Sequence record: NC_042100.1
Direction: 5' to 3' (one strand)
DNA: 64,000 bases
The position numbers were made by a program, and so were the translations under genes. The notes under the pieces were generated by a model that searched no databases, was not told where the DNA came from, and saw only the letters and a program-made list of their open reading frames with translations. Shown here piece after piece: positions 16,462 to 30,142 of this stretch. The stretch's first letter is position 1; every line of letters begins with the position of its first letter.

Positions 16462-17411
16462 ACACTAAATTAATCAACCTAGGTTTAAAAGGTTTATTTC
16501 AACACGCACTTCGTTCGATCCCTATTATCGTGGAGAAAGACTACTCCAAAGCTATGATGCATGATCTCTACGCTGCAAGGGTAACTAGTGGTGCGTGGGT
16601 TTCCCTCTCGTTTTATTGGAAAGAAGGTGACACGATTGTTGTTACAACAAAAGGGATGTCCCACATTGCTCAAACAGATTTTTCTTTTGATTACAACCCA
16701 AAGTACGGACATGACTTTGAAAAACTCATTCCTCACTCATGGAAACAAAAAGTCTCTGAAGGTGTTATCCGAACTTTCTTAAAGGCAGCCGACACTTATA
16801 ACTTCGAAACGGGATTGATCAGGAGTAAGGAAGGTGAAACTCTAAGTTACTCAATGGGGTCTGACTTGGTACCGGATTTGAAATTCAATCTTAATCCGAC
16901 TTTTGAATACGAACCTATCGAGTCATTAGTTAGAATGAGAGAGAAAATATATTTGTTGTTGGTGAAAGTAGCGCTCACAAACCTACAAGCATATATCGAA
17001 CACGAGATCGCCACACAAGCTCATTTAAGTGAACTCGGGAAACCTTTAGTGGATTTCCCGCACATTCAAGGTGACCGATTACAAGTAGGATTAAGACAGT
17101 ACGGTAGCGCGACACTCCACTTCGTTATCCCACTACCTTCTGGGGAAGAGTTGGTCTACTTGGTTCCTGAGTCCCGAGAAGACCGTCAAGTTTGGTATAA
17201 ACATATTCAAGAACTCGTCAATGAGGAATTAGGGTCTTTTGATCATTCTTCAGTATGCCGAGGGTTATCGCAAGTTTATCGCAACACCAATAACGGGATG
17301 TTTGTTTTTAAACCCACGCCTCACGACGGTGTTGACGTAATGGTCGTTGACCAGTCACTTTTACCGTGGGCAAGTGAACATACTCGTGAGATCTCTTACA
17401 TGCTCAAATAA
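16458..17411 (+). CDS. Hypothetical protein, paralog family
   Basis: 317-aa ORF. C-terminal LHFVIPLPSGEELVYLVP resembles 14031 IYLVLDTGEGLMEFLVP. Confidence 0.75.
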   Translation: MNTKLINLGLKGLFQHALRSIPIIVEKDYSKAMMHDLYAARVTSGAWVSLSFYWKEGDTIVVTTKGMSHIAQTDFSFDYNPKYGHDFEKLIPHSWKQKVSEGVIRTFLKAADTYNFETGLIRSKEGETLSYSMGSDLVPDLKFNLNPTFEYEPIESLVRMREKIYLLLVKVALTNLQAYIEHEIATQAHLSELGKPLVDFPHIQGDRLQVGLRQYGSATLHFVIPLPSGEELVYLVPESREDRQVWYKHIQELVNEELGSFDHSSVCRGLSQVYRNTNNGMFVFKPTPHDGVDVMVVDQSLLPWASEHTREISYMLK

Positions 17412-17416
17412 GCCCC

Positions 17417-17441
17417 TAGGGGCTCCTTAGAGGAGCCCCTA
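17417..17441 (+). terminator. Terminator-like hairpin
   Basis: TAGGGGCTCCT-TAG-AGGAGCCCCTA immediately after the stop. Confidence 0.6.
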
Positions 17442-17506
17442 ATACTCCATTCGATAAATCATACCAATCTTTTTTAATTAAGCTCTTAGAGCCTTAAGGA
17501 ACCATT

Positions 17507-18265
17507 ATGAACAAACAATGTCCTTTTACTTTACACATGGGTTATGGTCTACACGGCATGCCTATTCCTCACCCACCTTCAAGCATACATACGTTTGAAT
17601 CTCGTTTAGAGATGATGTCTAAGTTGGCTTACGCTTATCGAAGTTTTGACAATGCGTTCCAATGGATTGTTGATGTTTCTAATCAACTCCACCAAGACCG
17701 CGCTCAATCGTGGGATTTTGCTTATAAAAATCACCTCCTAATTTCTCCCGATAATTACGATAACCGTCAGTTCTCAATCGAACACCATAACCGTAAACGC
17801 AGTAGCATCACCATAACGGAATCCTACAATAAACTAAACCCTGACTTTTCGTTTAAGCTGGAATTCAGAGAAGGTAATGGATACGAACTTACTTGGGATT
17901 TACCTTGGGGTTTGTTTAAAAACCGGAACAACGAAGAGTGGTTTCATAAACGTCACTTTAATTTCAAGTTCAACACGTTAACTGAACCCGGCATCAAAGC
18001 CATGGTAGAGACCATCACCCAAGATATGTGGTTGGATCGTTTTAAAGTAGATAAAGAACTCGAAGCTTTCATACACGTGGTGAAGCCCTGTCCTAAGTTT
18101 AACTGGTTCAAATCAGAGCACGCCATCACCCGACCTTCTCCCATCAATGATGATTGCATGGATTCGGAACTAATTATTAGTCGTGTTCCCTTGAGACGAG
18201 AGTTGGTTACCTTACGTGGAACTTATAACGAACTCAGCGGTCTTAAGACCCACTTCATATTCTAA
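17507..18265 (+). CDS. Hypothetical protein
   Basis: 252-aa ORF with RBS AAGGA. Confidence 0.7.
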   Translation: MNKQCPFTLHMGYGLHGMPIPHPPSSIHTFESRLEMMSKLAYAYRSFDNAFQWIVDVSNQLHQDRAQSWDFAYKNHLLISPDNYDNRQFSIEHHNRKRSSITITESYNKLNPDFSFKLEFREGNGYELTWDLPWGLFKNRNNEEWFHKRHFNFKFNTLTEPGIKAMVETITQDMWLDRFKVDKELEAFIHVVKPCPKFNWFKSEHAITRPSPINDDCMDSELIISRVPLRRELVTLRGTYNELSGLKTHFIF

Positions 18266-18297
18266 AGTTATTTCCTAACGGATAATATATTATATGT
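18265..18297 (+). promoter_or_regulatory. Class II promoter with upstream AAGTTATTTCCTAAC box
   Basis: AAGTTATTTCCTAAC-GGATAA-TATATTATATGT. The same box and spacing recur at 22028-22060. Confidence 0.65.
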
Positions 18298-18592
18298 ACT
18301 AAAAAGAATCCGTCGAAGACCCCCTGAAAAGGATGGGAAAGGGTTATTTTTACATACGAGTTATAGTAGTACTCCTTAGAGTGATCTATGAGGTACGAAT
18401 AGTCACGGTGAGTGTTGTAGTACGAAGTACGTAAACACGATAAAAGGAGTGTACTACGTATAACGAGTAGTAGTTCATGTAATAGGCTTGCTGTAATCAG
18501 ATAAAGGAATTATATCCCTATATTACTAAGGGGATATAAAACTGAGTCATTTAAGTTATTAGGATAATAACGTTAGTAGGAGTAGATTCAAC

Positions 18593-19372
18593 ATGAAAGA
18601 ATTAGTAAAACAAATTGATAACACGAGTTTGCATCATTTACACGGAATGATCGTAACCGCTAAGGGGAAGCCTTATCGTCAACAAAACGTAAGCTTTACC
18701 GTTAAGGGCCGAAAGCAAGTTCGGTTAACACGAGCTCAAGGATGGTTAACTCATTTAACAAAACTCGTAGAAGGGTTCCCTATTCATTTAGTAGACTTAG
18801 CGGAAGAATTGCATTTTAAAGAAATCTTATTGCCGACTTACGAAGACTACGTGGTTCATGCTCCCTATGTGTGTAAAGTGATTAAATGGGAAGACTTAGA
18901 GCTATACATCTTACCGGGGTTCTTGGGGAACGCTGTCGCTGGGGATGGTAAGATCTACGAACTTTATGCAGATCATCGCAACAAAGATTGGTACTGGCAA
19001 GAAATCTACCCAAATCAAAACGGGTGTTATGATTTGATCAACAGTATCGACGGGGATATGTTGGAAGTCAGCGTAGACGACATTATTTATTTGTTGAAGT
19101 CTTGTGTTGTGACGGGGGATGATCTGAGTGACTACTACGCTAAGCGAGTAGTTAGTCGTCGAGCGGAAGTAGCATTAGAAGACGGGTGGGTGGAAATTGA
19201 TCCTAAAGACATTTCTGAACCCCATCACGTTGCTGCGCTGAAACAAGCTGACCAAGACCATGTCTTAGTTAGACTAGAAGTAAAACCCAAGACGGTTAGA
19301 GAAGCGTTCCTGAACGCCTATAAGCGAGCGGGAGGCATTCCTGTAGAGTGGGACAATCGTCTCGCTGTTTAA
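18593..19372 (+). CDS. Hypothetical protein (possible degenerate NUMOD4/HNH-associated motifs)
   Basis: 259-aa ORF with RBS AGGAG. Segments IVTAKGKPY and AVAGDGKIY...PNQNGCY are reminiscent of NUMOD4. No intact HNH is seen. Confidence 0.55.
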   Translation: MKELVKQIDNTSLHHLHGMIVTAKGKPYRQQNVSFTVKGRKQVRLTRAQGWLTHLTKLVEGFPIHLVDLAEELHFKEILLPTYEDYVVHAPYVCKVIKWEDLELYILPGFLGNAVAGDGKIYELYADHRNKDWYWQEIYPNQNGCYDLINSIDGDMLEVSVDDIIYLLKSCVVTGDDLSDYYAKRVVSRRAEVALEDGWVEIDPKDISEPHHVAALKQADQDHVLVRLEVKPKTVREAFLNAYKRAGGIPVEWDNRLAV

Positions 19373-19378
19373 ACCAGC

Positions 19379-19406
19379 ATCCTGCTTGCTGAAGAGCAAG
19401 CAGGAT
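19379..19406 (+). terminator. Intrinsic terminator
   Basis: 12-bp stem ATCCTGCTTGCT-GAAG-AGCAAGCAGGAT with a T-rich tail. Confidence 0.7.
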
Positions 19407-19443
19407 TATTGTTGTTTGTTAAATATTCATTAAAGGATTTATT

Positions 19444-20622
19444 ATGTCCATAGATACACTAGGAATCGACGATGAAATCGTTTTGACCACAATAGCAAAC
19501 ATTAATGCGCATTATAAAGAAAAACGTAAATTCGTCGACATTGCAAAAATGCAAGACATCGCCCCAGATATATTGACTGTGCGTTTTCTAAATCAAGGTT
19601 TAGAAACCCCTACGCATTACTTGAAAGAGTTACGTAAGGATTTAGCTAAGCGTTTAGTTTTTGAAGGCGAACTTTCACTAGAAGAAATCGCTAAAACCTT
19701 AAGTTATGATAAAACATCAAACTTTTACGTTTGGTATCTATCCGTTTTTGGAGAACGTCCTACTAAGGTCCGTGCACGCATGGGGTTAAAATCAAAAAGA
19801 CCGAGTTTAGGTTTAGTCAATGCGGTTATCAGCTCCATTGTCGAAAATATCGACCTTAATCCACATTTATACAAAGATGTTAATGTATTAATAAACGACA
19901 GTATTTATACAACAACTTACATCAGACAGAAGTTCATTGAACTGCACGGAGTAACCCCTAGGGCTTATTTGTTAAATAAGCAACTAGAGTACGTTGCCGA
20001 GCAAATCAAAAACCACGGGTATAAAGAAACCCGTCTGCTGGAAATGACCATCTACAACGCTCCTACTGGACTTAACAAAGCTTTTAAAGCAAAGTACGGT
20101 ATGACTACCAGTGAATTTGGTGAATCAAAATCTATCGGTATGTGGGCCAAGGTCCATGGTGAAAACGTCTGGATACTCCCTTCCCTCATGGAAGAGATAA
20201 TTGATAACGTTACCGAAAACCTGCTTGAAAATCGTCCCCACTTAACTGAGCTGAGAGAACTTTACGGAGTAAACACTTCTTCTTGGGAAAGAATGTTTAC
20301 TCTGTACACAGGCATGTTACCTAGTAAGGCGCGCTTATTCATCCGATTGGAAATAGTGGTGTACTTTTTACAAAACACTCGTTGGAAGTTTTCTAAGATC
20401 TTAAGGAAGGTTGGTTCGGATTATGAATACGACATCAGAAGATACTTAATGGCTAATTACGGACTGACTCCTGCGGAAATCCGTAAACATAAAGGTCCAC
20501 TCACTCGTCGTAACAAAACCAAGCAGTTTGTTCGTTTTGTTAAAACTAACGCCGACTTATGCATTAGAGAAGACGATATCCGTCTGGGTAAAATAAAGGA
20601 AACTGAATTATGTACCCTGTAG
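19444..20622 (+). CDS. AraC-family HTH-repeat protein (three DNA-binding domains, no effector domain)
   Basis: Three AraC C-terminal patterns: TPTHYLKELRKDLAKRL...SLEEIAKTLSY...FGERP; TPRAYL...AFKAKYGMTT; PSKARLFIRL...YGLTPAEIR. Confidence 0.75.
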   Translation: MSIDTLGIDDEIVLTTIANINAHYKEKRKFVDIAKMQDIAPDILTVRFLNQGLETPTHYLKELRKDLAKRLVFEGELSLEEIAKTLSYDKTSNFYVWYLSVFGERPTKVRARMGLKSKRPSLGLVNAVISSIVENIDLNPHLYKDVNVLINDSIYTTTYIRQKFIELHGVTPRAYLLNKQLEYVAEQIKNHGYKETRLLEMTIYNAPTGLNKAFKAKYGMTTSEFGESKSIGMWAKVHGENVWILPSLMEEIIDNVTENLLENRPHLTELRELYGVNTSSWERMFTLYTGMLPSKARLFIRLEIVVYFLQNTRWKFSKILRKVGSDYEYDIRRYLMANYGLTPAEIRKHKGPLTRRNKTKQFVRFVKTNADLCIREDDIRLGKIKETELCTL

Positions 20623-21335
20623 ATAAAGAATCCAGAATTCGTTTAATGGAAGATCTGGACAAATGGATAAATGAACACTACTTAGAAAAAGTCACCGTCA
20701 AAGACCTAAGTCACCAACTAGGTGTGTTCATCCCAGATGTTTACCGTCTGTTTGCTGAACAACGCAACACTACCCCGGGAGAGTACCTCCGACGTAAACG
20801 TTTAGTTAAAGCCAAAGCTTTGTTAGAATCAGGAATCCGTCCAACGCTGGCTGGAGCCCACGTTGGGTATTCTCACTTCCAATCTTTCGTTAAAGAGTAT
20901 AAAGCTTACTTTAAACGCCACCCTCGCGAAGATTACTCGGATACCCTTGAGGTCCCGACCATGGACTCTTATTCTAAAGAAACTATGGACCGATATTATC
21001 CTAGTGAGTTGCGTGAGAAGATATTGAATTATTTGCGTAAAAACATCAAAGTGAATTTCAATTACGCTGATGTAGAAAAGAAGTTTGGATTACCAGATCG
21101 TAGTTTAAGCGAAATGTTTGAACACTATTACGGTAAATCCTATCGTGAATGGAGAAAGGATACTAGGATGAAATTAGCTAAGGAGTTACTCCACAAAAAT
21201 CCAAGTGTTAAGATTTCAGACTTAGCGACTACCGTAGGTTCTTGTAGTGCGACCTATTTACGGAAGCAATACCAAGAAGTCTATGGAGTTAATATTGTTG
21301 AGCTCCGGGAAACTTTGAGAGGTGTTCGTGTCTGA
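20610..21335 (+). CDS. AraC-family HTH-repeat protein (two DNA-binding domains)
   Basis: VTVKDLSHQLG...TPGEYLRRKRLVKAKALL...VGYSHFQSFVKEYKAYFKRHP, plus a second copy ending ISDLATTVG...YGVN. Confidence 0.85.
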   Translation: MYPVDKESRIRLMEDLDKWINEHYLEKVTVKDLSHQLGVFIPDVYRLFAEQRNTTPGEYLRRKRLVKAKALLESGIRPTLAGAHVGYSHFQSFVKEYKAYFKRHPREDYSDTLEVPTMDSYSKETMDRYYPSELREKILNYLRKNIKVNFNYADVEKKFGLPDRSLSEMFEHYYGKSYREWRKDTRMKLAKELLHKNPSVKISDLATTVGSCSATYLRKQYQEVYGVNIVELRETLRGVRV

Positions 21336-22029
21336 TAAGAAATCGAAAGAACTCAAGAAGCTCAAAAGTGCCGCCAAGAAATATTGTTTGGAACCTAATG
21401 CCTCGGAATTAGTGTTAAAGAAAACCCTGTTTTCTTTACCTAAAGTCATTAAAATGTTCCGTGATGCAGGTGAGGGAAGTTTGTATGATTACATCACTCA
21501 TTTAAAAATGCTGGAGGCGAAGAAACTCTTAGATGACACCGATCTTAATCTGACTTCTATTTCCAGAGCCATTGGCTACGCTGATCGTAAATCCTTGAGA
21601 GAAAACTTTATTAAGCAATTTGGTATGTATCCTTTGGATTACCGCAACCGACCGAAGACCAACGACCTAGCTTGGGATTTGTTTAAATCCCATCCTAAGC
21701 TAACTGTACAGCGTCAGACGTTTTTGTTGGATCATGTCAAGAAGCATTACAAGGATTCTGATTTAAGTATTCAGACACTATCAGACCGATTCCGTTTAAC
21801 CCACCAAGACATAGACCTGATTATCAATCATCACTATGGGTCAGGATTGAAACAACTTTTATTAGACCTGCGTTTAAATCAAGCGCACGCTAAACTACCT
21901 AATTATTATAAGTCGGTGCGCCAACTCGCTGAGGAGTTAGGGTTTCTTGACTTTAATTATTTCGTAGTGAAGTTTGAAAGGAAATACGGAATGGGTCCCC
22001 GACGTTATCAACAACACGCACGTCTTTAA
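21322..22029 (+). CDS. AraC-family HTH-repeat protein (two DNA-binding domains)
   Basis: YITHLKMLEAKKLL...ISRAIGYAD...FIKQFGMYPLDYR and LRLNQAHAKL...LAEELGFLDFNYFVVKFERKYGMGPRRY. GTG start. Confidence 0.85.
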   Translation: MFVSDKKSKELKKLKSAAKKYCLEPNASELVLKKTLFSLPKVIKMFRDAGEGSLYDYITHLKMLEAKKLLDDTDLNLTSISRAIGYADRKSLRENFIKQFGMYPLDYRNRPKTNDLAWDLFKSHPKLTVQRQTFLLDHVKKHYKDSDLSIQTLSDRFRLTHQDIDLIINHHYGSGLKQLLLDLRLNQAHAKLPNYYKSVRQLAEELGFLDFNYFVVKFERKYGMGPRRYQQHARL

Positions 22030-22060
22030 GTTATTTCCTAACTCAACGTACATTATATGT
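22028..22060 (+). promoter_or_regulatory. Class II promoter with upstream box; predicted +1 at G22059
   Basis: AAGTTATTTCCTAAC-TCAACG-TACATTATATGT. It contains TATG, the motif used by phiKZ nvRNAP with the G as +1. Confidence 0.65.
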
Positions 22061-22486
22061 GAGCGGTACAAGATTAGGTTTAACTAGACTAGCGTGTCCG
22101 AAAAGAAAAGGTGTATGCCGCGAGTCCGACCTAGGAAGTTATCCCTTCATTACAACCGCTCACAACTCTTTTGGTTCAGAGGAAGTCCTCCTTGTCAACA
22201 TCGATGTCACTAAAGCCATTCTCTGAACCACCCTATTCGAACAGAAACCACTACTTTTTGTTCGTAGGACACTCGAGCCTTTAACTCAGTGTCCACAGCG
22301 GTACACCCCTGACCGCTTTAAAAATGGAGAGTGTTTCCTCAGCTCCCACACTCCGCCAAGGGATGCTAAGCCGAGGCTAGCCGGCTGGGTTCTTCGACCG
22401 CGTAAGAATCCAGTTCGGGTAATTTCAGTATTGGCACTGAGTTCCACTGCTTTGACCATCCCCTTCGCCGGGGATGGTGCTTTTTT
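22059..22486 (+). ncRNA. Putative structured non-coding RNA (~430 nt), family not recognised
   Basis: Has its own promoter and terminator and no ORF in the track. Serial stems: GTGAGCGGT/ACCGCTCAC, GGTTCAGAG/CTCTGAACC, CCTA..CGAACAGAAA/TTTTTGTTCGTAGG, GGACACT/AGTGTCC, AGCGGT/ACCGCT, GAGTGT/ACACTC, CTGGGTTCTT/AAGAATCCAG. Confidence 0.65.
22455..22486 (+). terminator. Intrinsic terminator closing the putative ncRNA
   Basis: ACCATCCCC-TTCGCC-GGGGATGGT followed by GCTTTTTT. Confidence 0.75.
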
Positions 22487-22527
22487 GCATTTTAAATATT
22501 TTTAACTAAACTTTAAAGGAGTTTAAT

Positions 22528-23493
22528 ATGTCTACATTACGTGCATGGTGTATTGGTGGTGCGGGTATTAACATCGGTTCTGCATGGAAAAAGTCGCTAA
22601 GAAACCTTCCTATCTCTAAAGTAGAGTTCATCGGTTTAGATACGTCTACTAACAACAAACCGGATGATGACTCGTTCATTTTAGAGTGTCCACCAAACAC
22701 TCGTGGTGGTGGTAAGAAACGTACTTTGAATCGTGACCTCATTCCTGATTTTGTTAACCAAATGTTGGTGAAACATAAAGCGGGTGATTTCAACGTTGTG
22801 ATTTACAGTGGTGCAGGCGCGTCGGGTTCTACTATCGGTCCTTTCTTAGTTCGTGCTCTCATGGAAGCAGGTATTCCTGTAGTTTCGTTCCTCGTGATCG
22901 ATCAAACCACAGACATCGAACTGGACAACACGATCGCGACTCTACGTTCCCTAGATGGTCAGCGTAAGCATTTTGATATGCCGGTCGTAATGGATGTACT
23001 GCAAAACGACGAGGCTTTAACTCGCGGTGAGTTAAACAAAATTGCTGTCGAGCGTCTCAACTTGCTATCACTGTTCCTAACGGACAAACACGAAGAGTCA
23101 GACTACGAAGACATCCGTCATTTGTTGGACTACTCTAGTGCGGTCGATATCCCACCGTCTCTTACTCGTATCGAGTTCTATGACGGTCTGACTATCGATA
23201 AGCGCCAAGGTAGTGCAGTAGCGAGTTTCTCTCTATACAGCTCTCGTAACGACATCCGTTCCGTCCAAATTGGTAAAGGTTATCGTGTGACGGGTGTGAT
23301 GCATCCAGATGCGATTACCCCTAACGATACAGGTGAACTACACATGATGCTTGAGTACGATAGCCTAACAGAACAAATCATCAATGATATGGAGCGTTCT
23401 AAAGAAAAAGCGGTAGAACGCCAGACTCAATTCACTAAGTCCCGTTCTAAGGACCTCACAGAGGGCTCTGACAATTCCGGGATGGTCTGGTAA
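22528..23493 (+). CDS. phuZ: PhuZ phage tubulin
   Basis: T1 loop CIGGAGINIG, IGLDTS, GGGKKR, signature-like SGAGASGST, DxxD (DYEDI), and a short acidic/aromatic C-terminal tail. Confidence 0.92.
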   Translation: MSTLRAWCIGGAGINIGSAWKKSLRNLPISKVEFIGLDTSTNNKPDDDSFILECPPNTRGGGKKRTLNRDLIPDFVNQMLVKHKAGDFNVVIYSGAGASGSTIGPFLVRALMEAGIPVVSFLVIDQTTDIELDNTIATLRSLDGQRKHFDMPVVMDVLQNDEALTRGELNKIAVERLNLLSLFLTDKHEESDYEDIRHLLDYSSAVDIPPSLTRIEFYDGLTIDKRQGSAVASFSLYSSRNDIRSVQIGKGYRVTGVMHPDAITPNDTGELHMMLEYDSLTEQIINDMERSKEKAVERQTQFTKSRSKDLTEGSDNSGMVW

Positions 23494-23513
23494 TACCTAA
23501 GTAAGACTTAACT

Positions 23514-23542
23514 ACGTATGGCATCTTCTAGGTGCCATACGT
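23514..23542 (+). terminator. Intrinsic terminator
   Basis: ACGTATGGCATC-TTCTA-GGTGCCATACGT with a T-rich tail. Confidence 0.7.
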
Positions 23543-23585
23543 TTATTATTTATATTTTTTAGTTTTATTAAAAACGGGAACGTAA

Positions 23586-23879
23586 ATGAGAAAGAACTGT
23601 ATTAAAGTCGTGAACATTGCACTTAACGACTATACAAAACTTATTGGAAACGAACATTCCGTTTTTAATGGAATTGCTCTGATCCACGAAACACTAACCG
23701 ATTTGGGTTACCACGTTTTAAATCGTCATATTGTGTATGGCGACGAAGCAACGTTGTATCCGGTCAAAACTTTCATCCATACCACGCTCGTAGCGCAATC
23801 AAGTGGGATTTCCACCGACACTCAAGTTTCGGTGCGTCCTGCTAGTCCCGGGTGCTATGCAGTCATGTTTTTTAAATAA
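23586..23879 (+). CDS. Hypothetical protein
   Basis: 97-aa ORF, first of a tightly packed operon. Confidence 0.6.
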   Translation: MRKNCIKVVNIALNDYTKLIGNEHSVFNGIALIHETLTDLGYHVLNRHIVYGDEATLYPVKTFIHTTLVAQSSGISTDTQVSVRPASPGCYAVMFFK

Positions 23880-23888
23880 GGGGTAATT

Positions 23889-24344
23889 ATGTACGTTGTC
23901 AACACGGGTCGAATTATGGAGAACTTACTTACTTTTGATAAGATGGAGTTCGATAATTTCACCATTCATGGTTATGTGCATGCTTTGTTGGAAGACGTCG
24001 TAGAAGTTTTTAATTCTAAGGACTTCGACCAAGCTTACGATCGTATCGGTCATCTCACCACACTACTAGGGAATAACACAGCAGTTGAAACGATTTATAT
24101 CGAACTGTTGAACGATCTTAAAAAGTACGCTCGTGCTTCAGGTTGGGACCCACGCCTCAAAATGAAAATCTGTGAAGAGAAAAATGTGAAAAACCGTGAC
24201 GGTATTATCCATCAAGTACTACTCATTATGGATTTGGATGCAACAGTTGAAGAACTTTCATTTGCCCCTGAATCATCAGTATCGTTAGGAGAGCTAGTAA
24301 GTGACAACCCTAGCCAAGATGAGCTTTCTAAACTCGTCCAATAA
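23889..24344 (+). CDS. Hypothetical protein
   Basis: 151-aa ORF with RBS AAGGGG. Confidence 0.65.
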   Translation: MYVVNTGRIMENLLTFDKMEFDNFTIHGYVHALLEDVVEVFNSKDFDQAYDRIGHLTTLLGNNTAVETIYIELLNDLKKYARASGWDPRLKMKICEEKNVKNRDGIIHQVLLIMDLDATVEELSFAPESSVSLGELVSDNPSQDELSKLVQ

Positions 24345-24891
24345 AACGAAAGTAGTAACTGTCGACCTTTCCCAAGTTAATCAATTAGTTTACGATTTGA
24401 TGTTTGATAACGACCTTCGTTCAATTCCAACTGAACGAATAGCCGATGTAAAGGCAGGACTCATTTATCAAACCCTTAGGGATATATGTTCGAACTCAAA
24501 GTTCAAATTATGTGTCGCTCCTTCGGAATCCTCAAAGTACGAAGTAATCTACTTCCAAAACAAACCACAAGATCGTGTCGATTTTGAAATCCATTTAACC
24601 TCCCTTGAATACGAAACGACTTTGTTACATCGTTATTATTCAGCGGGAGTGTTAGAAGATATCTTAACCGACATCGGTTACGCCTTTTACCAAATATTGT
24701 ACTCAATGACACCCAATACCCGATTTGAGCACGAGGTTCAGTTAGCTCTACCAAACATCGGACATTTGATAGTCGCAGTGCATGAAGACGATCTAAGGGA
24801 ATGTAATGCTGACGATATATCAGACACAGTCATTAGCGGACTTTATACAGAGGCATTGCTTGACAGACTTCACGGAGATGACCCAAGCTGA
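24301..24891 (+). CDS. Hypothetical protein
   Basis: 196-aa ORF with a GTG start and upstream AGGAG. Confidence 0.65.
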   Translation: MTTLAKMSFLNSSNKTKVVTVDLSQVNQLVYDLMFDNDLRSIPTERIADVKAGLIYQTLRDICSNSKFKLCVAPSESSKYEVIYFQNKPQDRVDFEIHLTSLEYETTLLHRYYSAGVLEDILTDIGYAFYQILYSMTPNTRFEHEVQLALPNIGHLIVAVHEDDLRECNADDISDTVISGLYTEALLDRLHGDDPS

Positions 24892-25189
24892 GTTACTCCA
24901 CGCTTTCTTTTATACGGCGTATGAAAACACCGTATCCTTTGGAAGACAAGCCGCAGTCGAGCAAGCCATCGCGGGGATGTTTACTAACTTGTTACGATCC
25001 ATTGTGATCATAGAAAAGTTTGACGACTTCCCTTGGTTAATTATTCAAAGCGAAATCACGGCAATTTGTATTCAAATGGTGGAAGACATTGATGACATCC
25101 TATCCGGGAATGAATTGATTGCTTACAACCCACTTCCCAATGTTGAATATCCTAAGGCCATGATGTTGGAGATAGTTCATGAATGTTAA
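24806..25189 (+). CDS. Hypothetical protein
   Basis: 127-aa ORF. The true start may be the in-frame ATG at 24878. Confidence 0.6.
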   Translation: MLTIYQTQSLADFIQRHCLTDFTEMTQAELLHAFFYTAYENTVSFGRQAAVEQAIAGMFTNLLRSIVIIEKFDDFPWLIIQSEITAICIQMVEDIDDILSGNELIAYNPLPNVEYPKAMMLEIVHEC

Positions 25190-30025: not shown

Positions 30026-30046
30026 AACTGTGTGTCCATTATATGT
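30025..30046 (+). promoter_or_regulatory. Class II promoter upstream of the chimallin leader
   Basis: TAAC-TGTGTG-TCCATTATATGT has the same TAAC-N6-core spacing as 18265 and 22028. Confidence 0.5.
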
Positions 30047-30142
30047 AGATAAAACTTTCTCCAGCCGTAAGGTTGGGGTGGATAGGACCAGAATTGAAAT
30101 ATTTAAGACATAAAATCGTAAGGTTTTGAAGTCCCTAAATAT

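Follow-up and report, generated by a model that had tools for sequence, protein, structure and literature searches.

Three overlapping genes of Vibrio phage Aphrodite1 encode a conserved array of seven AraC-type DNA-binding domains

The window analyzed here is a 64,000-nucleotide stretch of the 237.7-kb genome of Vibrio phage Aphrodite1 (MG720308 / NC_042100), in which window position equals record position minus 62000; positions 19000-22600 match that genome at 100% identity. Three consecutive genes within it, gp053, gp054, and gp055, encode proteins built from three, two, and two AraC-type DNA-binding domains (DBDs), an array that is real, conserved, under selection, and already annotated. 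RefSeq taxonomy places Aphrodite1 in the genus Aphroditevirus of the Gorgonvirinae, and the phage has been grouped with the nucleus-forming Chimalliviridae (PMC10587174). The gene for the phage tubulin PhuZ is the next one downstream of the trio (phrog_4733, E 8e-103), bearing out the phiKZ-like (chimallivirus) setting claimed in an earlier note on this DNA. The three genes are arranged as follows:

19444 to 20622, plus strand: gp053, 392 residues, with AraC DBD units at residues 10-113, 122-230, and 245-349 and a C-terminal helix at residues 360-383
20610 to 21335, plus strand: gp054, 241 residues, with AraC DBD units at residues 6-108 and 123-240 and a disordered linker at residues 113-119
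21328 to 22029, plus strand: gp055, 233 residues, with AraC DBD units at approximately residues 8-108 and 126-231

The reading frames overlap by 13 nt between gp053 and gp054 and by 8 nt between gp054 and gp055, and a Shine-Dalgarno sequence precedes each of the three starts. The RefSeq start of gp055 is a GTG at 21328 with the Shine-Dalgarno sequence GAGAGG 6 nt upstream; an alternative GTG start at 21322 would yield a protein of 235 residues and an overlap of 14 nt.

Pfam scans of the three proteins returned HTH_18 as the only family passing its curated cut-off, with no match to a sensor or dimerisation domain. HTH_18 was detected in three stretches of gp053 (E 1.4e-25), two of gp054 (E 4.3e-26), and two of gp055 (E 9.4e-25), and the whole-protein scores were 87-91 bits for all three against a curated cut-off of 33.6 bits. 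When the whole phage genome was searched in six frames with PF12833, the seven units were found individually at 50.7, 48.4, 47.4, 43.5, 40.1, 32.0, and 24.6 bits (E 4e-14 to 6e-6). Five of the seven exceed the cut-off on their own, while units 2 and 3 of gp053 fall below it yet are significant (E 3e-8 and 6e-6), and none of the three genes contains an internal stop. The matches in the first and third genes lie at:

19570 to 19779, 19909 to 20118, and 20263 to 20487, plus strand: HTH_18 matches in gp053
21445 to 21651 and 21781 to 22014, plus strand: HTH_18 matches in gp055

Most members of the AraC/XylS family, other than the MarA group, carry an N-terminal sensor or dimerisation domain. The earlier note had described overlapping genes composed solely of AraC DBDs in a 3+2+2 arrangement with no ligand-binding domain, and had proposed an HTH_18 scan as a check. 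Each part of this description held: all three proteins matched in 3, 2, and 2 stretches, the units tile the chains, the genes overlap, and neither the Pfam results, which contain HTH_18 alone, nor the AlphaFold2 units, which leave no space, accommodate a ligand-binding domain. The proteins have isoelectric points of 9.3-9.7, and mean net charge is +4 to +8 in six of the seven units, unit 3 of gp053 being near neutral.

The AlphaFold2 model of gp053 (predicted local distance difference test [pLDDT] 80, predicted template modelling score [pTM] 0.53) consists of three seven-helix units that cover nearly the whole chain, together with a low-confidence linker at residues 117-120, a short hairpin at residues 233-244, and the extra C-terminal helix. 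The model of gp054 (pLDDT 83, pTM 0.49) has two seven-helix units with the disordered linker between them. Good local confidence coupled with low pTM suggests a beads-on-a-string layout, and the models thus suggest that gp053 and gp054 are AraC DBD beads joined by flexible linkers. Prediction of a gp053+gp054+gp055 heterotrimer gave a score of 0.00, which counts neither for nor against any of the readings considered below. The best Foldseek matches in the PDB were all AraC-family DBDs, comprising GadX, the YesN C-terminal domain, MarA bound to DNA (1bl0), AdpA bound to DNA (3w6v), the AraC DBD, and SoxS (7w5w), with template modelling (TM) scores by target of 0.67-0.79 over ~100 residues. At the sequence level, a profile of gp054 orthologues matched SoxS (residues 2-102 of 107; E 3.7e-12), RamA (E 1e-9), and MarA (E 3e-9), in each case with unit 1 aligned across the full length of the bacterial protein. 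In Aphroditevirus, gp054 unit 1 keeps an Arg at the position of MarA R46 in helix 3 and has Gln and Lys at the positions of Q92 and R96 in helix 6, residues which we take, from work on 1bl0, to be DNA contacts of MarA. Some other recognition helices, at residues 91-102 of gp053 and 166-174 of gp054, lack basic residues, and the exposed residues of the recognition helices vary between phage genera, the hosts of which are all Vibrionaceae.

MarA, SoxS, and Rob each have one DBD, bind as monomers to one 20-bp site, and contact the alpha C-terminal domain or sigma-70 region 4 of host RNA polymerase (RNAP). The phage units are like MarA, SoxS, RamA, and the N-terminal domain of Rob in consisting of a seven-helix domain with two helix-turn-helix motifs and no sensor, and the fold match to the MarA/SoxS group has TM scores by target of 0.67-0.72. 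In contrast with MarA, SoxS, and Rob, the phage chains hold two or three DBDs, three chains are co-encoded, identity is ~20-28%, and the genes are carried by a lytic nucleus-forming phage with its own polymerases.

The proximity of gp054 unit 1 to the SoxS/RamA/MarA group, and the presence of 7w5w and 7vwy among the fold and sequence matches, would suit a host-directed takeover, in which cytoplasmic DBD-only proteins bind the Vibrio chromosome and either act with host RNAP as MarA and SoxS do or compete with host AraC regulators, reprogramming host genes before, or instead of, the breakdown of host DNA. The canonical AraC mechanism requires sigma-70 RNAP, and we judged the claim of the earlier note that activation of this kind depends on host RNAP to be fair. 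AraC-like regulators encoded by prophages of enterohaemorrhagic Escherichia coli act on host genes. However, the recognition helices show little conservation from one phage genus to another, even though the hosts are closely related, and no close host homologue was found, the best non-phage matches reaching at most 99 bits. Taking these points together with those on operon context given below, we regard action on the host chromosome as rather unlikely, while acknowledging it as a strong rival, since it needs no new mechanism and early timing fits it.

A trio with matching sizes, order, and upstream neighbours (homologues of gp051 and gp052) is present in 10/10 related phages. The relatives compared were the isolates USC-1, 2 TSL-2019, PDCC-1, phiKT1019, pTD1, VP4B, and phiKT1028, and the metagenomic jumbo phages L024 (a 244-kb contig) and L026; some locus alignments left out phiKT1019 and phiKT1028. 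Protein identity between orthologues of different genera falls to 26-50%, and the paralogues inside Aphrodite1 are 20-26% identical. The most conserved of the three is gp054, at 92-96% identity across all four Aphroditevirus phages. In the relatives, adjoining genes of the trio overlap by up to 31 nt or are separated by up to 13 nt, and the annotated gp055 start of pTD1, 113 nt downstream, looks too late. In a maximum-likelihood tree of 55 single units from the eight isolate phages, each of the seven units formed its own clade, with ultrafast bootstrap support of 96-100% for six units and 89% for gp055 unit 1, and the second units of gp054 and gp055 were sisters (93/90). Because each unit forms a separate clade, the seven-unit layout is older than the split of the genera, with no unit lost or homogenised. 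The ratio of nonsynonymous to synonymous substitution rates (dN/dS, Nei-Gojobori) is 0.05-0.15 for all three genes across the four Aphroditevirus genomes, demonstrating purifying selection on gp053-gp055.

These data bear directly on whether the trio might be a decaying, functionless remnant of one long multi-domain gene broken by frameshifts, as could be imagined from the overlaps between the genes and from the 678 positions of the matching PHROGs profile, phrog_7620. A split pseudogene or frameshift remnant was ruled out by the conservation in 10 phages together with the dN/dS values, and the matching frames and sizes at such low protein identity, the lack of internal stops, and the Shine-Dalgarno sequence before each start likewise make decay extremely improbable. 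As a separate observation, in PDCC-1 (operon at L006 4001-6586) gp053 is near that of 2 TSL-2019 (dN 0.066), and gp055 is near that of Aphrodite1 (88% vs 70%); these different nearest relatives show that the operon recombines between its genes.

The region upstream of the trio contains the following features:

18518 to 18526, plus strand: phiKZ-type early-promoter core CTATATTAC, 75 nt upstream of gp052
18593 to 19372, plus strand: gp052, 259 residues, phrog_24322, the putative first gene of the operon
19379 to 19406, plus strand: hairpin between gp052 and gp053, GC-rich and with a T-rich tract after it, resembling an attenuator or terminator
11552, 18518, and 45693 of the window and 2464, 29034, 151513, 164537, 196438, 206411, and 223942 of the record, plus strand: copies of the early-promoter consensus

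The octamer CTATATTA occurs 10 times in the genome, every copy being intergenic and on the plus strand, and is embedded in the longer consensus TAAAtaTTTTCAAATCTATATTAYC...GTG, which agrees with the early promoters of phiKZ, 201phi2-1, OBP, EL, and N1M2 (PMC7058600 Table 2). The distance from the core to the downstream gp052 homologue is 68-99 nt in 10/10 phages, and gp052 precedes the trio in all relatives. Every relative also has a GC-rich hairpin, differing in sequence and trailed by T-rich DNA, at the matching place between gp052 and gp053, and just 25-40 nt, containing the Shine-Dalgarno sequence, separate this hairpin from the gp053 start in the relatives. Candidate promoters directly before gp053 were rejected: consensus matches of sigma-70 type or phage type occur there at chance level, and TTAAATATT, common to the upstream region of PhuZ, corresponds to the AT-rich upstream half of the early promoter, with no usable core before gp053. 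Downstream of gp055, no terminator was found before the non-coding region, and the next hairpin of terminator type is at 22455-22478. Given the conserved early-promoter core and the lack of space for a promoter before gp053, the trio is most probably expressed early in one operon with gp052, by read-through of the hairpin.

Two further observations concern gp052. As a candidate for a detached sensor domain it was rejected, having no Pfam family and uninformative Atlas neighbours (score <=0.61). The leader of gp052 (18527-18592) contains a stretch of ~45 nt, including a small inverted repeat (GTTATTAG...AATAAC), that is near-invariant in Aphroditevirus, phiKT1019, and L024 and is better conserved than the coding sequence after it; this leader may be a translational or transcriptional control element.

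The operon structure is also relevant to the possibility that multi-helix-turn-helix strings bridge, bend, or coat phage DNA in the nucleus at low specificity, in the manner of nucleoid-associated proteins. Such an architectural role would fit the disordered linkers and low pTM of models whose pLDDT is good, the overall basic character of the proteins, the variation of exposed recognition residues between genera, and the fixed number of seven units. However, an attenuating hairpin upstream would be unexpected for an abundant coating protein, and the AraC DBDs characterised to date are, to our knowledge, sequence-specific. Moreover, the paralogous units, at 20-25% identity, have long remained separate from one another, pointing to seven different specificities, and we consider a low-specificity role improbable.

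Non-coding elements, each preceded by a common motif, flank the operon on both sides, and related features occur elsewhere in the genome:

18278 to 18475, plus strand: non-coding block and candidate small RNA between gp051 and gp052
22059 to 22486, plus strand: non-coding RNA region after gp055, with the terminator-like hairpin at 22455-22478
18267 to 18279, plus strand: first copy of GTTATTTCCTAAC, a candidate operator, with a 9-nt spacer between it and the downstream ATTATATGTA (18289-18298)
22030 to 22042, plus strand: second copy of GTTATTTCCTAAC, a candidate operator, with a 9-nt spacer between it and the downstream ATTATATGTG (22052-22061)
18289 to 18298, 22052 to 22061, and 30038 to 30047 of the window and 142493 to 142502 of the record, plus strand: decamer ATTATATGT[AG], four genome copies, all intergenic
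202207 to 203175 of the record (L013:1387-2355), outside the window: fourth AraC-like gene, 322 residues, adjoining an RNase H gene

The upstream block is 97% identical between Aphrodite1 and phiKT1019, whereas nucleotide identity in the flanking genes is 53-75%, and it is recognisable in 10/10 phages. Its minimum free energy has a z-score of -3.17 against shuffles, and 83.9% of cells are paired compared to 41-51% in slid controls; few compensatory changes were seen in the MAFFT alignment, the pair counts support a conserved structure only modestly, and the long closing stem seems to shift register between genera. Rfam and tRNA scans covering 17000-25000 and 17000-23000 returned no match. The 490-940-nt non-coding gap 3' of gp055 is homologous in 10/10 phages by nhmmer, including three without PhuZ. 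These three are the Tidunavirus-type phages pTD1, VP4B, and phiKT1028 (L004, L007, L008). They lack phuZ but retain homologous non-coding sequence 3' of the trio, and the third AraC gene of pTD1 and VP4B has its stop codon within an early-promoter-like core, GCTATATAAC.

Both flanking non-coding elements start with GTTATTTCCTAAC, a 9-nt spacer, and ATTATATGTR. The exact 13-mer has only 2 copies in the genome, at 18267 and 22030, and is kept as RTTAWTTYYTAAC in Aphroditevirus and phiKT1019. Only one near match (2 mismatches) is intergenic; it is found 130 nt ahead of the fourth AraC-like gene, and five phages conserve it there as ATTATTTYYTAAC. This gene, kept in the same Gorgonvirinae set, encodes one clear HTH_18 unit at residues 39-108, and visual inspection suggests a further one and a half. 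On this sequence evidence GTTATTTCCTAAC is a candidate operator, a lead rather than a result. TATG, which is contained in the decamer, is the phiKZ late-promoter consensus (PMC7618050), and the decamer may therefore be a small-RNA promoter. Other candidates failed: TTGATCAA, tried as a regulon motif, is mostly coding, and none of the local repeat arrays was convincing as a set of binding sites.

The earlier note had proposed that the trio and the adjacent non-coding RNA might form a regulatory system. What we found lends this link circumstantial support only, in that the region follows the trio in 10/10 phages and the 13-nt motif is common to both flanking elements. The linkage to two highly conserved non-coding elements in 10/10 phages, together with the recognition helices of gp053 and gp054 that lack basic residues, could also be taken to mean that the AraC folds have been repurposed for neighbouring structured RNAs or for proteins, for example as the scaffold of an RNA-protein particle. 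However, the strongest units retain MarA-like features in their recognition helices, and we know of no precedent for AraC DBDs binding RNA, so that we rate a role away from DNA as very improbable.

Based on the data presented above, we tentatively favour, at somewhat less than even confidence, a reading in which the AraC DBD strings are regulators acting on the phage's own DNA, produced from one early operon and controlling a local regulon. By fold and domain content, gp053-gp055 are AraC/XylS proteins stripped to their DBDs and are predicted to bind DNA, with two or three MarA-like monomer units strung flexibly along each chain. Since there are several such units per chain, one chain could occupy two or three ~20-bp sites at once, either as a composite 40-60 bp site or by bridging separate sites. 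Under this proposal, transcription would start at the early-type promoter before gp052 and read through the hairpin into the coupled trio, and the proteins would then enter the phage nucleus and serve as lineage-specific repressors or as specificity factors for the phage RNA polymerase. The regulon would be small and local, comprising the two flanking non-coding elements and the fourth AraC-like gene, each preceded by RTTATTTYYTAAC.

Several points weigh against this proposal. The 13-mer motif was defined post hoc from the data, its near matches across the genome (13 vs 7.5 +/- 3.8 in shuffles) are at chance level, and its downstream copy is absent in Tidunavirus, where the early-promoter-like core is found instead. 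A k-mer enrichment analysis of upstream regions gave no regulon-wide motif, yielding only the early promoter, AT-rich runs, and the Shine-Dalgarno-like TTAATTAAGG. Unit 3 of gp053, being weak (24.6 bits) and near neutral in charge, may not bind DNA. The sequencing runs listed as holding this stretch are DNA or metagenome only, with no RNA run among them. In addition, known AraC activation works through host sigma-70 RNAP; as this enzyme is said not to enter the nucleus, a non-canonical mechanism would be required for the strings to act on phage DNA.

Chimalliviruses transcribe with their own RNAPs. In one version of the proposal, the strings would be imported into the nucleus as sequence-specific factors for the phage multisubunit RNAP, controlling the two flanking small-RNA genes and the fourth AraC-like gene via RTTATTTYYTAAC at a fixed distance from the TATG-containing start region. 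Promoter recognition by chimallivirus polymerases is as yet poorly defined; the promoter consensus of the phiKZ non-virion polymerase is just 4-5 bp, and extra factors may be needed (PMC7618050). We hold this specific version to be improbable.

With respect to the choice between phage and host DNA, one trio-carrying phage, Ariel (phiKT1028), breaks down the genome of its host (PMC12908238), a point against the host-directed alternative. That alternative also leaves unexplained the conserved tight linkage to phage non-coding elements, although the early-type promoter context suits a takeover role. Overall, four considerations tip the balance slightly toward phage DNA as the target: the candidate element, the fact that linkage to phage non-coding genes is conserved, Ariel's breakdown of host DNA, and the divergence of the recognition helices between genera.

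We also determined how widespread such arrays are. A gp054 profile searched exhaustively with HMMER against 1.84 billion cluster representatives recovered six orthologue clusters (E 2e-123 to 6e-40; 154-427 bits), and beyond these orthologues only generic AraC matches of at most 99 bits. Among the generic matches were tandem arrays of HTH_18 alone, including a protein of 677 residues with 5 stretches and nothing else, as well as proteins of 504 residues (5 stretches), 370 residues (3), and 215 and 263 residues (2 each). The five-unit protein of 677 residues is encoded between extracytoplasmic function (ECF) sigma genes on a bacterial-looking contig, and the two-unit protein of 215 residues adjoins araA and a melibiase gene in an NCBI metagenome-assembled genome. 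Clusters in AlphaFold DB likewise include proteins that align across both gp054 units (e.g., A0A4R2H9X3 and A0A7C2DHF4). The phage proteins are like bacterial and metagenomic tandem HTH_18 proteins such as P0013 (5 units), P0033 (5), P0050 (3), and P0018 (2) in being sensor-less multi-DBD chains, but the latter are distant single genes (<=99 bits), whereas the phage trio is a three-gene operon. The view that tandem DBD-only arrays are atypical is thus correct insofar as they are unusual, but the profile search and AlphaFold DB reveal others in bacteria and metagenomes, so they are not unique. The generic matches also include fusions: in the metagenomic proteins P0026, P0028, and P0012, four-unit AraC DBD arrays are fused to Hsp70 plus TerB-C, to TerB-C alone, or to ankyrin repeats, and the fusion to TerB-C alone matches the PADLOC SngA model of Shango; the arrays in these fusions may be the DNA-sensing parts of defence-like proteins. 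For gp053-gp055, PADLOC returned no match to an anti-phage defence model.

Among 50,697 phage records searched by tblastn, gp054 matched 34, of which 15 are Gorgonvirinae; the remainder consists of several contigs of bacterial origin, a few small phage records, and uncultured contigs from faeces. Searches of the same records with gp053 and gp054 found the trio restricted to Gorgonvirinae of Vibrio and Photobacterium, with no match in any other chimallivirus. To judge from these records, the trio is not part of the Chimalliviridae core genes, and AraC domains are rare in phage records.

The genes already carry annotation as AraC-type regulators, a point that weakens the interpretation given in the earlier note. 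Two of them are named "lactose operon transcriptional activator" and "Msm operon regulatory protein" in GenBank, all three are named "transcriptional regulator" in RefSeq, and the phiKT1019 entry reads "AraC-type DNA-binding protein". In PHROGs, gp053, gp054, and gp055 match phrog_7620, "transcriptional regulator", with E values of 4e-147, 6e-68, and 1e-58. This family, annotated by similarity only, includes Aphrodite1 gp053-055, pTD1 gp140-142, VP4B gp065-067, and the phiKT1019 genes in identical order. A full-text literature search found no functional study of these genes, and the terms "transcription factor", "transcriptional regulator", and "helix-turn-helix" are absent from a 2025 review of nucleus-forming phages. 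This recurring architecture of sensor-less AraC domains in tandem has, as far as we found, no prior study.

The trio belongs to a known family, of which it is an unusual variant, and its biological setting is unexpected; the annotation itself is not new. T4 MotA is an early phage DNA-binding protein that switches on middle promoters, working with AsiA on host RNAP; the analogy to the trio is functional only, as an early DNA-binding protein that could redirect transcription to genes expressed later, and the folds are unrelated. The analysis also provides new leads, namely the second conserved non-coding block upstream and the 13-nt motif before both flanking elements, with a near copy before the fourth gene, and the ten early-promoter copies could serve to map the early regulon of Aphrodite1. 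This lineage keeps seven distinct AraC-type units, or nine or more with the fourth gene, beside two conserved non-coding elements, making the trio a tractable place to ask whether nucleus-forming phages use sequence-specific DNA-binding proteins, and whether these act on phage or host DNA. If the improbable reading as nuclear polymerase factors were true, these proteins would be the first described case of a chimallivirus polymerase served by gene-specific transcription factors.

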